From Guillardia theta CCMP2712 (Eukaryota; Protista; Cryptophyta): 64,000 nt of DNA. The notes beneath the pieces were generated by a model. That model had not been told where the DNA came from and made no database searches. It saw only the letters and a program-made list of their open reading frames with translations. Shown here piece after piece: positions 2,120 through 23,902 of the stretch (position 1 is the first letter of the stretch; each line of letters opens with the position of its first letter). The DNA is taken from the NCBI RefSeq assembly GCF_000315625.1, contig NW_005434631.1, positions 248,001 through 312,000 of the forward strand, given 5' to 3'. Position numbers and translations under genes: made by a program.

Positions 2120-4490
2120 TCACCCGTCGTGCCTCCTCCTCTCGCTGATCCTCACGAGATTCGCCAGTCGCTCGTCCACCCGCACCAGTCGCTTGCTCAC
2201 CTGTCACCAATTCATCCCTTCCTCCTCCAGCGCCCTTCCCTCCCCCTCCTCCTCTCGCACTTCAACCCGCTTTCCTCTCTCTCCTGCACGATTCCCCCTC
2301 CCCCGCCCCGCACCTCTTCCTCTCTCTCTTCTCTTTCAAATCGCATCAACGCATCCTCACCCCTCCTCCTCCTCCTCCTCCTCCTCCTTCCTCCCTCCCT
2401 CCCTCCCTCCCTCCTCCACCTCTTCGATTTCTCGGATGAGCCGATTCCGAGCTGTTGTAGTCAGTCAAGGCCTTTCAACCAGCCATCCCGCACTCACCTT
2501 CCTCTTGCTCCCTCGTCCTCCTTGGCGACCTGTTCGCCGGCAGCACATACTCAGCCTCGCTCCCACAGAAACCAGGAGCATCTCACGCTGACTTGCGGGG
2601 GGCCATCGACGTCCCTGCCTCTTGTCCCGCTCCTGCAGCAGCTCCTCACTAGAGGTCAGCGCGACCTCCCGCACAGACCTCGGGGGTTCTCCTTGCACAT
2701 GGCCGATGGTCGGCAGCTCCGTACTCCCCTCCGCAGCATCTCCATATCGTTGTAGAGCTCGCGGTACAGCAGCTCCCCCTGTCGGACCCTCTTCCACTCC
2801 CTCTTCAAGCTCAACCTCCTCGAGAGTCTCCCTCCTGCCCCCCCCACCGCTCCCCCCCCTGCCTCAGCCTTGATTCCCCTCCACCAGTGCTGTATAACTC
2901 GAGCAGCGGAGGTGAGGACGCGGAGCTTGAGGTGGTTGTTGTCCGCGCGGCTCATCATGAAATTCTCGTTGTTGTTAAGTCGGATCCCCTGGTTTGCCGT
3001 CGCCGTCACGAACGCGACTGCCACGGGCCCCATCCCCATCGCCATGCACACGGTGAACTTGCCGAAGTCCGTGATGACGACAGTGCCGTAGCCCACCTGC
3101 AGCACAAGCGTCCGCCACCCGTCACTTACTCTCCTCTCCTCCCTTCCCCGCACGCATGCCTACCGTGCAGAATGTCACGTAGATGATCCAGAGCTGATCC
3201 CACAGGTAGACGCTGTGCTCGGTGTAGGCTGGCCCCTCGGCCACGCGAGTCATGTAGCCGATGCTGAGGACGGTGATGCCGATGAAGATGCAGATCACAG
3301 CGATGGCTTGGCGCTTGATCAGAATCTTGACAGCGAGCAGAGAGACGGAGATCCAGCTGTTCTGAATCCACTCTACGATGGTGTAGTCACGTAAAATGTA
3401 GGCAACCTACAGTTGTTATAGTGAGCAACTGCAGACGTTTAAACATGGGCAGCACCTCAAGGTTGAAGTATCGGTACACGACCTGCACATGGCGCCGTCA
3501 CTGGACGTAGCAAGGCTGTTTCCGTTACCTTCATGTGCATCCATTGAAAGATGTGGTAGAAGCGGACGAAGGTGGCTACTGCCAGGATGGAGTCGAGGCG
3601 ATAGTAGATCACCGTCCCGTCCGATTTCACTGCCATATCGTAGTGCACGAAGGGAAGGTTGTGAACGAAGTTGATCAAGAGCTCCAAGGTCAGTCGGAGC
3701 CTTCTGATGATCTTCGGGGAGGAGGAGAATTCGTCCTTCCTAACAGTGGCGGTGGAGGTGGAGGTCTGCATCGAGGCGATCTTTTTCCGAAGGGAGTGCT
3801 GCACCAGCAGCAGGCCAAGGATCACAGCTGTGATCAGGCTCTGCAAGAGCTTTGCATCCTCCCCGAGCGGCTTCGTACACTTTCGAGGGTTTTGCGCCGT
3901 TTGCTCAAGAGCTATCTCCTCCGACAGGCTCGGCAAGTGTGGAATGTAGTCACCCTCGACGCAGAGCTCGTTGATGGCGACCGCTATTAGGATTGACACA
4001 AAGGCGAGCAGCGAAAGGATGCCTTGTCTTCGGTTCATCATGTTCTGAATGTCTCTGATCTTCCTGTGCCTGATAGTCTCTTCTAGCCATATGTGCCTGG
4101 CCTTGGACTGCATTGCAAGCATACATAAGCAGGCATACATTGCAAGCATACATAAGCAGGCATACATTGCAAGCATACATAAGCAGGCATACATCGCAAG
4201 CATACATGACAAGGTGGCAAGCATACATGAGCAGGCATACATGACAAGCATACATGAGAAGGCATACATTGCAAGCATACATGAGCAGGCATACATTGCA
4301 AGCATACATCAGCCCATCAAGTTCGTTGGAAGCGTCAATATCTCCTCACCTTGAACGAGTCTCTCGTGCTGCGCAGGCTCGTGTTTGTTGGTCGAATGTT
4401 GTTCTCAATGACCTTCGTCTTCGACCCTCGCAGGAGAGATTGGACCAAGGAGGGCGTAAACACGAGCTCAGCATGAACGTTCTTCATCCC
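2120..4490 (-). CDS. SK/KCNN-like calcium-activated potassium channel
   Basis: Hydrophobic TM exons (LSLLAFVSILIAVAINEL; RLTLELLINFVH; VRFYHIFQW). Pore LWIIYVTFCT|VGYG is split by an intron. AARVIQHWWR is a CaM-binding-like segment, followed by a coiled-coil-like tail. Ends approximate. Confidence 0.8.
4110..4308. repeat. 27-bp intronic minisatellite (~7 copies)
   Basis: Unit cattgcaagcatacataagcaggcata in tandem, inside intron 4108-4349 of the channel gene. It explains the spurious MLAMYAC ORFs. Confidence 0.95.
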
Positions 4491-4608
4491 TGAAAGAGAG
4501 GACAGGTCGGATGCTTGATCTTACTTCCGTCTATCTTGACGTATCATCATCTTCTGAAATCAAACATGGCATCAGTCAAGCTTGTACGGACAAGTGGGAG
4601 GGGATTTA

Positions 4609-4724
4609 AAAGCGTGCATCATCGAAAAGAGCATTGTTATGTTCGTCTAAAAGCGTGCATGATCGAAAAGAGCATTGTTATGTTCGTCCAAAGGCGTGCA
4701 TGATCGAAAAGAGCATTGTTATGT
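4609..4724. repeat. 41-bp tandem repeat (~2.7 copies)
   Basis: aaagcgtgcat(c/g)atcgaaaagagcattgttatgttcgtc recurs at ~4609, ~4650 and ~4691. Confidence 0.9.
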
Positions 4725-5180
4725 CAGTCTTGTCGCTTCTAGTCGTCTCTTGTACCTGCCCTGCATCCTCAGTTCGGAGCTTTTGACATTCCGTTATCAG
4801 ACCGTTACACATGGGTTGCATTCATAGTAGAGCCAACAAAGCGACACTTGTGCAGGGAATGGGCACCTAGGGGGTGGGGTAGTCCTTCACTACCGGTACT
4901 TCAAAGTATATTCCTTTAATGAGAGGAGTGGTGGGTGGGACTAGGAGGGGTGCAAGAAGTTGTCAAGCAAGCTTTGGGGGGCGATTGAGCTACGATGGCT
5001 GAGAGCGTAATGGCGGAAGGTAACGAAAATGAGAGAAGAAGGGGAGGGAAAGGGAGGGAAAGGGAGGGAAAGGGGAGGGAGGGGAGGAGGAGATAGTTAG
5101 ATTGATCGTTTCTGGTAGGCCGAAAGTTTGGAAGATGGTTCTGGATTAAGAACGAGACTCATGGTCAGTGAGAAAGTTTC

Positions 5181-7057
5181 CTTCGATTCCTCCGTTGTTC
5201 TGAAGCAGAGATGAAACTCCCAGGATTCTTTGAAAATGCGTACAAGACCAAATGCTACTGTTGGATCGAGAATGGATGTATGTTTGCCTCAGTTGAGAAA
5301 GAGAAGGCAAGCACCTTGCAGACAGTCTTTGCAAGGCACGTGATTGAGACGAATGCTTCTCAGTCGTCCAGCGGCAAGAACGGGTTCCTCACGTTCCAGC
5401 TTGACAAATGGAAGGTGCCACCTTGATCTCGTCCTGTGAGAGAACCCTCTGAGTGAGTTTGGTGGTGGCTCAGGCCAGCTGCTACGACAAGGTCAAATTC
5501 GAGCTGCGCAGCATTTCCGAGGGGCGGGCAGTCAGGTTCAAAGCGCAAAGTCCCGAGGACTGTCAGAAGTGGGTGACGATGTTGATGAAAGTTGGCATCT
5601 TCAAGGTGACGGCATGACTTGCTGCAAACATCTCGAGTCACCCTTCGCAGTCGCCTGAAGTCTTCGGGAGCATCAAGTATGAGACAAGACCGATGGTGAA
5701 ACTCGACCTCCTCCTTCGTTTTCTCAACCTTCCTTCCTGTCTCCTCGCATCCTTCCCCTCCTCCGACTCTGTACATCTCTGTGCATCTCTCCCTCGTGCT
5801 CCCTGATCCTGTATCCTACCCCCTCGTTGTCTCCACTTTCTCCTTCCCCCCCCCCCCCCATCTCTATATACCTCTCTCCCCTCCTTAAAAGTGTATGTCA
5901 AGAGACATCCCACTGATGCAGTGAGAGCAGGAGGAGGAGGACGCCTTTCAGCTCGTTGAGACCGATGGCATGCACTTCAAGACCCTCGAAGTCAGGTTCA
6001 AGTTCGACAGAAAAATCATGCTCGCAGCTGTGAGGCAAAACGGACTCGCCCTGCAGTTTGGGAAGTTCTCAGTGCCCGAAGGAAACATCGTGGACTACAC
6101 GGTAGACCGGGAGGTCGTGCTGCAAGCGATCAGGCAGAACTGCTCGGCCTTCTCGTTCGCGGATGTCTCGCTGCAGGTTGACAGGAGCGTTGTCCTCGCC
6201 ATGTTCGACACAGACATCGCCGACGTGATGATGCTGCTGCGCAACGGCATTTCACCGCTCATGCTGGATGAGGAGGTCATGCTCAAGGCGGGGGAGAGAG
6301 ACGCGCATGCGGTGGAACGCGCGAGGAAGAACTTGTACATCTGTCCCAACGTCAAGGAAGAGAGCCTGTCACCAAAGGAGCTGAAGGACCTTCAAGCTCA
6401 GGTTAGGAGAGGCACTTGTTCGATGTGCCGGGTTGATGTCGTTCTATCCTCTTGTCGCTATCCTCTGTTGCATGCTGGTCCGCGTCCTCCTGTCCTCCTA
6501 CTTGTTCTGCCTTATTCTCCTCCCAGGCTCTTCTCACCAGGCTGACTGAGAACGGCGACCTCGTGTCGTTGAAGAGGTTGCTGGCGATGCAAGTTGACAT
6601 CAACACATGTCCCTATGTAAGTATTCTCCCTGCTCCTCGGGCCCCTCTCTGCCTCCTCTGTCCTGTCATTCTCTCCAATTCCTCCCACTTTCTGCTCTAC
6701 ATGCACATCCTGGTATCTTTGTCTCTAGTCCTTCTTTCACTCCCAACGTTCGCTTCCTTCTCCTTCCTCCCTCTCCTATGCTGCACTCAGGACGCTTGTT
6801 GATCCTGCGCTTTCCACTGATCCTTGTCTGCCACCATCTTCCTTACGTTCACTAGATCGGCTACTCTGCCATGCACGCGGCCGCTGAGTCAGGGAGAGTG
6901 GGGCTGGTGCACTTCTTGCACGAGCAAAAAGCTTCAGTTGAGAGTCAGATGACGGTGAGAGAAGTTTTCGTGCAGATCGTACTTGCTCTCTTTCTCTTCC
7001 TCCTGACCTTCTGCTCAGGGAGGTACCACTCCTCTTATGCTAGCCGCAATGGGTAAA

Positions 7058-19915: not shown

Positions 19916-20236
19916 GCTTGCACGACCAAATCCTTTGCGGTGGAGGGTACACAACATTCTAGCATATCTTTGACTTGAACATCTACGAGAACCTCAAACT
20001 TTGTTTCCTTTTTACGGCCCATACACCACAGTGGAACTGAGACTGACTACCACTTATTTTCCCATTAACGAGTGTCACGCAAATGCTACAGACTGCTTCT
20101 GGTATCGTCTGGATGACATGCGAACGCAGCAAATGGTCAAAATCTGTGAATTTATGTAGAATGTTTGCGGCGCCGCTGCAGCGGCAGACGGACAACTAAT
20201 CAACTTGCGACGTATCTGGCAATGAGCGGAGCCTGT

Positions 20237-20552
20237 GACGGAATACAAGTTTGTTAGACTTGTACTAGTCCAAAGTCACGCAGACGTCACATCGACCTTA
20301 GTTGTAACAAGACAGTTTTTGCTCAAGACCGAGTTTAATGCACACAAAACCAGAATTGAGGAGCACATGAGAGATTAGGATGTGAAACCCAAGCATCCAG
20401 ACATGAGAGGACCTTAGCAAGACGGCTAGGAAAGCCCCCCTCTTCGTCCCACACGCTACATGTCCGCCTTGCCACGTAAGTCGTCTTGGTTTACAGGAGA
20501 GTTTTTGTTAACATGGCGCTATCTGACTGGCACGGCTGGCATACGTTCCATC
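20237..20552 (-). repeat. 3' LTR
   Basis: Matches 21424-21739 and abuts the polypurine tract. Confidence 0.93.
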
Positions 20553-20824
20553 CTCCCCCCGAGTTTCTGAAATAGTACGTTACATCGGACGTCAGAAAGT
20601 CACGCAAACAAGAATGTCAGCAGATCCAAGTCAAGATACGACGATACATCGTCAAGTTCACAGTCATGCTGAGTGGGCAATAACCATTCAAGGATTGTCC
20701 ATTCTGAAGAAGATTTTCATGCAGAGCTATTAGATGTGCAGTAAAGAGATAAGGAAGATGCATAGCGAGCGGGTGCAATGAAGAGCGATAGAGTATAGGA
20801 TAAGAGAGTCTGAAGAGAGAGAAG

Positions 20825-20827
<3 letters not shown>

Positions 20828-20861
<34 letters not shown>
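20828..20861. repeat. (GA)n microsatellite inside the LTR element
   Basis: About 16 GA units. Confidence 0.95.
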
Positions 20862-20863
<2 letters not shown>

Positions 20864-21423
20864 TGCCCGCCGGCATTTGAAGACCAAAAGATAAATTTTT
20901 TGAACCGTAAAGAACTTGTGACCAGAGATTGCTGCCGCGAGATTGGAACATCCGTTTCAAGGCATCTGAAGATTGTTGTGCAGTAGTACCTTGTTCGCCG
21001 ATCCAGAAGTAGCTCCAGTTATGCATGCCACAGCCTAGCTCCATGACATGAAACTTCCGCCAGATCTCCTGGTAGTTCCATTTGATCCTACTCAAAGATC
21101 AAGAAGATTAAAATCGAATAAGCTTCAAGTGCGTTTCCACACGGTTAAGCAGATATTCGACCGACCAATCTGGCTGGGGAAGGCTTGTTTTTCCAATTCG
21201 AAGATCAATCAAACAAATTGAGGCTGAAATGAGAGGCCTAAACAACTTGCGGCTAGAGAGAGAGCCTGATTGAAGAGAGGAGTCATCCGAATTTGTAAGG
21301 CTTGAATTGCATGAATTTTCGACAGTAACGAAACGATACCAAGAAAGAAAAAACTCCAGTAAACAATTCAACTAACCAAATATAAGATCAACATGATTGA
21401 GCATGTAATCGGGGCCCATAACC

Positions 21424-21739
21424 GACGGAATACAAGTTTGTTAGACTTGTACTAGTCCAAAGTCACGCAGACGTCACATCGACCTTAGTTGTAACAAGAC
21501 AGTTTTTGCTCAAGACCGAGTTTAATGCACACAAAACCAGAATTGAGGAGCACATGAGAGATTAGGATGTGAAACCCAAGCATCCAGACATGAGAGGACC
21601 TTAGCAAGACGGCTAGGAAAGCCCCCCTCTTCGTCCCACACGCTACATGTCCGCCTTGCCACGTAAGTCGTCTTGGTTTACAGGAGAGTTTTTGTTAACA
21701 TGGCGCTATCTGACTGGCACGGCTGGCATACGTTCCATC
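21424..21739 (-). repeat. 5' LTR
   Basis: Matches 20237-20552 and abuts the primer-binding site. Confidence 0.93.
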
Positions 21740-23902
21740 AGCCTGCCTATCTGATCGCCGGATGGTCGTCACGGAGGAGTTCTTCCTGTGGCGCGCCTGG
21801 CAGTGGCCGGGCCGCGCGGCTGCCACTGGGGCCGGGGGCGCGCCGGCTGGGCGACCCGCCGCGGCCCGTCTCCGACAGCAGTGCCACCGGTGACTGTCGG
21901 ATAAGCCGGGAGGATAAGAGTTAGTTGGTTCTCACTGTCCGATGTTTTCTCTTCTCCGAGCGCCGTCACAGTAGCCGGGCACCGTCTGACACGCTGGTTT
22001 AGTTCTCTAAAAGCCTGTTTAGAGCGCACGGTAGTACTTGACTAGTCGTTCAGTGCGGCCGACCGGGCCCGGGCCTTGCCGGTGATCGTCACCGGACGGT
22101 CCGATCACTGAGCTCAGTTCGGTGGCTTCTTTACAGTCTCGATTTTACAAGCAATTTGTACCGGGTTTTTAAAAGACCTATATTATATTATAGAATCTGT
22201 CACGGGAGGCCTTGTACCAGAAACTCCTCGTTGCTAGTACTTCCTTGGAGTGATTTGAAGGGGTAGTTTTGCCTGGAATCCGATGGGTAATAGGGCCCGT
22301 TTCTTGTGCAGGGTTTTCGATTAGTGATGCGACGCGCCTCAGAGTCTTAAGTGTACCCCCCTCTATGAGCCTGATGTCCACGGGTGGGGGTATGCGGACC
22401 CAAGTGGAAAGGTATCTCTGCTCTATGGGTGATCACGGATCAAGCAAGGGGTGGGGTGATTTACAGAATTTCCTGTGCTCTGAATTGAAGAAAGCACAAA
22501 TTGCGTGTTTTCAAGGGTGCTATTAGTCAAAGTTTGTTGTATTTTTATGGTGGGGTGGTAATATTTGAAATATACCCATAAATGTTTTGCTGGGTGTTGA
22601 AAGATCTTTCGGGGTGACTTTTGTTGGGGTGGTTTTTTTAAAACCTGTTTTATAAGTTTTTTTTTAAAATACTAAAAATAGTTTTAGGCTCCAAAAAGTA
22701 AAATAGTTTGACTTGCAGCTTGCTGAAACGACATTGAGTGAAAACGTTTCACGAATAGAGAAGAATTTGCTCTTGGAAGCAAAATGTGAAATGATCTTCT
22801 TTCAGTTTTTACAACGAGCCCCCCTAGCCATCTCACCTCAATTTCTAAAAATATCAACAAAGCGTTCCTTCTGGTACCTTTGGTTTCTCATTTTAGCATC
22901 AAATGACTTCGATCGTTGTGATCTCCCCTGCCAGGTCAATAAGGCTGACCAAAAAAACATTGTTTTTAACTTTGTTTTAAACAGGGGTGAGCGAATTCGA
23001 TTTCGGCTACAGGTATCTGAATTGGGTCTCATGTTCGTCAAGATCATCAAAGCTCTTTTTGTAATATAAATATTTGCCAACTTGAATTCAAATTTCACAA
23101 GCAAAAAGCATCAAAATGTCAAATTAGAGGAGCCCTACTGAAAACGAAGCAAAATACAATTGAATTCCCCCCAACCCTACCCGTGAAATCGAGAATGCTA
23201 TTGCTGTGTCCCATGACCCATCATCTAGTACCCCTACCCCCTTTTACCTCTCTTTGGAGAACTACCCCGCCTTCATCTTTCAAACTTGAATAATCTGCGA
23301 TTTCAATTGACGATCTATAAAGTTTAAATATTATATGAGTATTTGAAGAAATAAACGTTCAAATTAAAATTTATTTTTGAACATTTGAGCTCAAAATCTT
23401 CCACCCTACGGGATATTTTCAACAGACCCCAACAAAGTAGCAGGACCCGTCCACTGATCACCCCCACCCCCTTTTTGATAAATTTCCTCTCCTCCTTCGC
23501 TCGACTCCCGCCCAACCCTCTCCTCTCGTTCTTGCAATCCCCCTTCACCTTCCCCCCTCTCTCTTTCTCATCCTTTCCCGTCCCTCCTTTTTCTCCTCAA
23601 CTCTCTTCTAGTCTCCTCGTATATTCAATCTTGCACGATCCTGCCAGATTTCCCTCCCTCATCTGCCATTCTTGATCTCGTAATCTAGATCACACTCTGG
23701 GTTTCGTGAAGGACGACTTTGATTGTTTATCCTGTTTTAAATCGGTTATTTATCTGAGCTGAAGACACTCTATCTTCTGCCGCAAGCTCATCAATTTATT
23801 GGTCGTGTACGTGTCTTTGTTTTGAATGGTTTATTGAAGCTACTGGCCTGGGGATCAAACCCTGGTTTGGATGGTTGTCTGAGGCACAAAAGTAGCTTCC
23901 GG

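Follow-up and report, generated by a model that had tools for sequence, protein, structure and literature searches.

The TG...CA ends found in retrotransposons with long terminal repeats (LTRs) and in retroviruses are the textbook case of a sequence that is templated internally and recognised by integrase. Both copies of U5 descend from the 5' end of the minus-strand DNA, and both copies of U3 from the 5' end of the plus-strand DNA. In the copia element, TG reportedly follows the polypurine tract and CA precedes GGTTATGGGCCC. For the transposition of Ty1, TG...CA ends are generally assumed to be absolutely required (PMC2939329). Here we analyze an LTR element of Guillardia theta CCMP2712 whose integrated copies end in TG...CA although the outermost T and A are missing from its inner LTR junctions. 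The element lies in a window (the whole stretch of DNA analysed, 64,000 nucleotides) that corresponds to C43:248001-312000 of an assembly of 87.1 Mb in 669 contigs; C numbers denote contigs and L numbers extracted loci.

Among described systems, copia of Drosophila and Ty5 of yeast resemble the Guillardia element in that their primer-binding site is complementary to the anticodon arm of the initiator tRNA-Met (tRNA-iMet) and not to a tRNA 3' end. The 5-bp target-site duplication and the outer TG...CA are also shared, as is the position of integrase before reverse transcriptase in an autonomous relative described below. Priming by half a tRNA has been described for copia, and by an internally cleaved tRNA for Ty5 (PMC5371799). 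The Guillardia family differs from both in that its two inner bases are missing, and the window element carries no genes. A second point of comparison is Tf1 of Schizosaccharomyces pombe, whose reverse transcriptase is capable of strong template-independent synthesis (PMC3035444) and leaves non-templated nucleotides on the 3' ends of most cDNA in vivo (PMC11042837; PMC3035444). Tf1 is, however, a self-primed Ty3/gypsy element. Its CA is templated, with the extra nucleotides following after it and regarded as a by-product, whereas in Guillardia the added base would be the A of CA itself and would be inherited only as an act, not as a sequence.

TRIM and SMART elements and further small LTR retrotransposons that are non-autonomous share with the window element the two LTRs, the primer site and polypurine tract, the absence of coding capacity, the many copies and solo LTRs and the dependence on an autonomous partner. 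At 1505 bp with 316-bp LTRs, the window element is larger than classical TRIMs, which stay under about 1 kb, and an asymmetry between inner and outer junctions is not a described TRIM feature. HIV-1, in which a retained tRNA rA defines the last U5 base, offers a parallel of another kind, as it shows that processing, and not U5 itself, can determine which base comes last in an LTR. In HIV-1 that base equals the first base of the primer site, inner and outer ends agree and integrase removes the base; in Guillardia the outer base does not match that of the primer site and stays in place. In literature searches of partial coverage, LTR termini that their templates lack, or that are made by untemplated addition, were not found described.

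The window element occupies positions 20236-21740 of the minus strand and has two LTRs; its features are listed in Table 1. Read on the minus strand, its outer ends are ...CAGGC/T/GATGGAACG... at the 5' flank and ...TTCCGTC/A/CAGGC at the 3' flank. The inner junctions are ...TTCCGTC/GGTTATGGGCCCCG, where the 5' LTR meets the primer site, and ...CTCGGGGGGAG/GATGGAACG..., where the polypurine tract meets the 3' LTR, with a G following the 5' LTR and a G preceding the 3' LTR. Direct LTRs, a target-site duplication, a tRNA-complementary primer site and a polypurine tract are all present, no gag- or pol-like open reading frame (ORF) was found in the interior, and TG and CA stand at the outer ends only, not on both LTRs. 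The element belongs to the non-autonomous LTR retrotransposons; the missing inner TG and CA are the finding itself and leave it within that class. Since the LTR cores are identical at 316/316 positions, in agreement with the initial annotation, the window copy is very young, and two point changes at its junctions are not credible.

Exact-pattern matches over the whole assembly, which contains at least 386 candidate LTR copies, confirmed that the asymmetry is a property of the whole miniature family, which comprises well over 100 copies, some with identical LTRs. At outer ends, the base before GATGGAACGTATGCC is T in 70 of about 77 cases, with five C and one possible A (C201). At inner junctions, all of them behind a recognisable purine tract, the same position holds G 48 times, A three times and T never (0/51). 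GGGGGGAG abuts the LTR in at least 40 copies, and the junction between tract and 3' LTR reads CGGGGGGAG/GATGG in 40. A further G before an LTR start, at C13:918735, has no recognisable purine tract and could mark an inner or an outer end. On the other side of the LTR, CTTGTATTCCGTC is followed by A in 80 of the 90 outer ends and by T in five, G in four and C in one, whereas all 50 inner junctions continue with GGTTATG and none with A (0/50). Fisher tests of outer against inner junctions gave p ~1e-28 on each side.

When ends were matched by hand by their coordinates, about 33 elements or solo LTRs were found to have a perfect 5-bp duplication outside the extra bases, which are T..A in 29, T..T in two, C..A in one and C..T in one. 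Because the duplications lie outside T and A, both in the window copy and in these copies, the two bases came with the inserted DNA. The initial annotation had assigned them to the element from the window copy, and the wider set bears this out. It had also named two findings that would count against its reading, TG and CA at the inner junctions of other copies or outer bases that vary at random. Both checks favour the reading: no copy shows either dinucleotide at the inner junctions, and about 90% of the outer bases are T and A.

The trait extends to an autonomous relative. From 54 RVT_2 matches in the assembly, the best-scoring family was taken as this relative; it has three copies of about 6.3 kb (C46:430590-436925, C97:233282-239523 and C3:130806-137184), LTRs of about 404 bp, and an ORF with an rve integrase core, an SH3-like domain and RVT_2 in copia order. 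Of 16 matches without the purine tract in front of them, 12 show the outer 5' end T/GACGGATC or T/GACGGATCAC, while the inner junction between tract and LTR reads CAGGGGGGC/GACGGATCAC, that is GGGGGGC/GACGG, in 4/4. Outer 3' ends are ...ATCCATC/A in 10 of 13. The inner junction of LTR and primer site is ...ATCCATC/GGTTATGAGCCTCG (beginning GGTTATGAGCC) in two intact cases, and three more read GGTTAT before diverging, so that A is found in 0/5. Five pairs of ends have matching 5-bp duplications. The outer base is thus T whether the inner base is G, as in the miniature family, or C, as in the autonomous relative. Judging by these junctions and the predicted domains, the trait is one of a copia lineage that encodes reverse transcriptase and integrase itself. 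The two families resemble each other in their termini (GAYGGA...TCCRTC), in the primer site and in the G-run tract, and for this reason the Ty1/copia lineage is probably what mobilises the miniature family.

The primer could be identified from the primer site. The common variant of the site, GGTTATGAGCCTCG, matches the complement of the anticodon arm, nucleotides 27-40, in the host tRNA-iMet gene exactly, and is not complementary to a tRNA 3' end. This gene (L076:1473-1546), located by a pattern with an initiator-type T-loop, has the anticodon arm CGAGG-CTCATAA-CCTCG; four identical gene copies are present at C9:100612-116400 and C209:33017, three of them clustered within 16 kb. As the primer ends in ...AACC-3', any of its nucleotides left behind would appear as G, and not as A, in the plus strand. 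The genomic sequence after the discriminator base of the tRNA gene continues with CC. The window variant GGTTATGGGCCCCG, present in 20 of 50 family copies, pairs with the host tRNA imperfectly, with one G.U pair and one C.A mismatch, and no tRNA gene matching it exactly was found in the host assembly. This variant mismatches the only host initiator tRNA found, yet copies whose LTRs are identical carry it. Evidently the primer does not serve to renew the primer site in each cycle, which would fit an early halt of plus-strand strong-stop DNA at a modified base of the anticodon loop. Eight matches to GGCTCATAACC were considered as tRNA genes and rejected, being the primer sites of other LTR families.

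Under the standard scheme of reverse transcription, outer and inner junctions can differ only through retained primer nucleotides, untemplated addition or later processing. Retained primer nucleotides would read G or C here. Intermolecular strand transfer from a canonical partner was rejected, as it would equalise inner and outer junctions, and each templated route that we could construct predicts other sequences. We consider it probable that each 3' end of the cDNA gains a single untemplated A, which completes the CA used by integrase for joining. We also lean towards the broader view that in this Ty1/copia lineage CA-3' is not inherited as a sequence and would instead be rebuilt in each cycle by an obligatory +1 A-tailing of both cDNA ends, leaving a terminal base pair that is untemplated in genome or RNA.

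In such a cycle, the minus strand would be primed by a 5' fragment of the host tRNA-iMet ending at C40 and the plus strand by the G-rich polypurine tract, and the finished cDNA would end in ...GTC-3' on the plus strand and ...ATC-3' on the minus strand. One nucleotide, usually A, would then be joined to each 3' end without a template, most likely by the element's own reverse transcriptase following the "A rule" at blunt ends. Integrase would join the A-3'-OH ends to a 5-bp staggered cut, and gap repair would place T opposite each A. The integrated copy would show TG...CA at its outer ends, with the inner junctions untouched, and the next RNA would again be made without the T and the A. The junction architecture, its constancy across the family, the identity of the primer and the autonomous relative are observed; from them we infer the addition step itself, blunt ends before it, the reverse transcriptase and not a host polymerase as the adder, and a requirement for the A on the part of integrase. 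Integrase should tolerate a terminal A that is unpaired because, by analogy, the transferred ends are frayed in known intasomes.

The minority outer bases suggest when the base is set. One copy on C22 has an outer 3' T in place of A, and its LTR pair has 0 substitutions in 318 bp; an array on C123 also has an outer 3' T, with one substitution in 326 between its LTRs. Minority bases in such very young copies argue that the base is set at insertion. In a BLAST-defined sample, the extra base was off the majority at 3/39 ends, compared with 8/984 at the neighbouring 12 LTR positions (p = 0.007). Pooling both 3' ends gives about 150 added A, against 9 G, 6 T and 2 C, a spectrum that fits the preference of polymerases for A at blunt ends as well as what has been published on the Tf1 reverse transcriptase. 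The initial annotation had reasoned that the inner junctions serve as the templates of the outer U3 and U5 ends. This reasoning holds, with a retained primer base reading G (or C) and not T or A, and its proposal of an untemplated A has gained support from the inner C of the autonomous relative, the minority bases in LTR pairs with 0-1 substitutions and the precedent of Tf1.

Several observations concern individual copies. Odd termini occur in the copies on C30 and C62. The LTR pairs of L023 (C22) and L027 (C41) differ by 0-1 substitutions and by a single indel of 13 or 14 nt. The copy in L031 (C17:34900-42000) is flanked by a 9-bp target duplication, CAACTTGCC (L031:249 and L031:6838), and not by one of 5 bp, and its ends are AT (two extra bases) on the left and A on the right; a longer untemplated tail may have been preserved here by an insertion that was aberrant or integrase-independent.

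Other origins of the two bases have to be weighed against untemplated addition by the reverse transcriptase. Each primer might leave one ribonucleotide behind (the rG or rC of the polypurine tract, the rC40 of the tRNA fragment), opposite which a polymerase inserts A and not the complement. This would give exactly one extra base at both ends and an outer T and A regardless of whether the inner base is G (miniature) or C (autonomous), and the rare outer 3' G (4/90) would be a faithful copy of rC40. We nevertheless regard it as unlikely, since placing A systematically opposite G as well as C is not something that polymerases are known to do; by sequence alone, its outcome is the same as that of untemplated addition. 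The addition might also be the work of a host enzyme, a repair polymerase or one like terminal transferase, that acts after reverse transcription. The sequence data say only that the base is untemplated, and most polymerases without proofreading prefer A at blunt ends. A host enzyme is an unlikely candidate, however, given that the trait was found only in two families that share termini, primer site and purine tract, and that in other families of this cell, primed by the same tRNA, the primer site is preceded by ...CA or ...TA. In addition, cDNA is normally completed inside the particle.

A templated origin of the 3' A can be constructed from the primer: U41 of the tRNA, next after C40, would be kept on the minus strand and copied. 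The host tRNA-iMet does have U at position 41, and the A before GGTTATGAGCC in other LTR families could pair with it. If U41 lay opposite the last C of U5, however, the outer end would read ...CCGTA and not ...CCGTCA, and if it were an extra base, plus-strand strong-stop DNA would carry an A into the new junction of U5 and primer site, where none is seen (0/55, 50 + 5). The symmetrical T at the other end would be left unexplained, and we think this origin very improbable. There is next to no chance that T and A stem from the target, through a 7-bp duplication or a strong target preference, or that the window copy carries two point changes or assembly errors, as the junction counts refute both. 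Flanks of the form A-N5-T on both sides do occur in a few copies (C27, C56), but among 13 checked copies A stands at -7 in only 5/13 and T at +7 in 4/13, and T and A differ and cannot be one duplicated base. The same junctions in more than 100 independent copies speak against point changes and assembly errors.

Several points weigh against untemplated addition of A as set out above. The evidence is of a comparative kind only. The complement of U41 is A, which invites a tRNA-templated model for the U5 side, and that model has been rejected by argument only. The 10% of ends that are not A could partly reflect later mutation. Beyond the termini, primer site and purine tract, the LTRs of the autonomous relative and of the miniature family have no similarity, and BLAST of the miniature element against 30 copia reverse transcriptase loci detected none. 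Lastly, no control family with both inner and outer junctions canonical was found in the same genome, where only inner ...CA/GGTTATGAGCC junctions of other families were seen. The L032 family, a candidate for this control, has a single copy, and the abundant GTGGAAACA/GGTTATGAGCC family consists of tandem units of about 300 bp whose outer LTR ends were found nowhere in the assembly.

Dozens of units of about 300 bp with ...GGGCCCGTGGAAACA/GGTTATGAGCC lie at C170:22925-37254 and 79423-81456 and at C114:29332, 205800 and 207404; these tandem units look like a satellite derived from the U5/primer-site region of a retrotransposon.

A number of candidate partners and relatives were rejected. The long "elements" of C17 (L031) and C6 (L040), considered as autonomous partners with the same LTR, are miniature copies with nested insertions. 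In L031, one of these is a 2.4-kb insertion in the miniature LTR (about 426-2812) with 246-bp terminal repeats that are inverted and not direct, a 5-bp duplication and an ORF of 512 aa that matches zinc-knuckle and retrotransposon-gag domains weakly; a second nested insertion, of 2.7 kb, spans 3314-5975. In one copia family, ...GGGAGGGA/GATGGATGATG downstream of pol was considered as an LTR start, but all eight matches have one upstream context and the site is internal. Of two loci with C before the primer site, the one on C110 (L077) has no LTR pair and does not stand as a further family, and the one at C13:268905 (L078) is a chance match in an EGF-repeat gene. A metagenome scan for the U5/primer-site junction gave 12 matches, all of them by chance in unrelated contigs.

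At C113:206713-208408, the same 5 bases, AGCGA, form the 5' flank of a miniature copy and the 3' flank of an LTR in the opposite orientation, a sign that two LTRs may have recombined and caused an inversion. LTRs and interiors alternate in tandem arrays (LTR-interior-LTR-interior-LTR) at C116:35255-39118 (L008-L010) and C123:126423-129166 (L024-L025), with identical LTRs and one target duplication enclosing each whole array. Structures of this kind have been ascribed to integrase-independent insertion in Tf1 (PMC11042837).

Table 1. Features of the window element, in window coordinates
Feature	Position	Strand	Remarks
5' copy of target-site duplication, CAGGC on minus strand	21741-21745	minus	same 5 bases at 20231-20235
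Outer T completing TG	21740	minus	absent at polypurine-tract/U3 junction
5' LTR core, 316 bp, GATGGAAC...TTCCGTC	21424-21739	minus	316/316 identical to 3' LTR core
Primer-binding site, GGTTATGGGCCCCG	21410-21423	minus	directly after last C of LTR, no A between
Non-coding internal region	20561-21409	minus	no gag/pol-like ORF
(CT)n microsatellite inside internal region	~20814-20859		
Polypurine tract, GGGGGGAG	20553-20560	minus	abuts 3' LTR core without T between
3' LTR core, 316 bp	20237-20552	minus	316/316 identical to 5' LTR core
Outer A completing CA	20236	minus	absent at U5/primer-site junction
3' copy of target-site duplication, CAGGC	20231-20235	minus	

In conclusion, a successful family of miniature LTR retrotransposons and an autonomous relative seem to complete both of their ends with a final base that has no template. 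With the genes for the autonomous element's reverse transcriptase and integrase available, this idea lends itself to direct testing. If it is true, LTR boundaries drawn from alignment of the two LTRs, or from the primer site and polypurine tract, can fall one base short of the integrated ends, and the family would offer a natural system for studying what integrase needs at a 3' end. What is usually taken for untidiness to be trimmed by integrase, the addition of untemplated bases by reverse transcriptase, would then be an essential step in replication.

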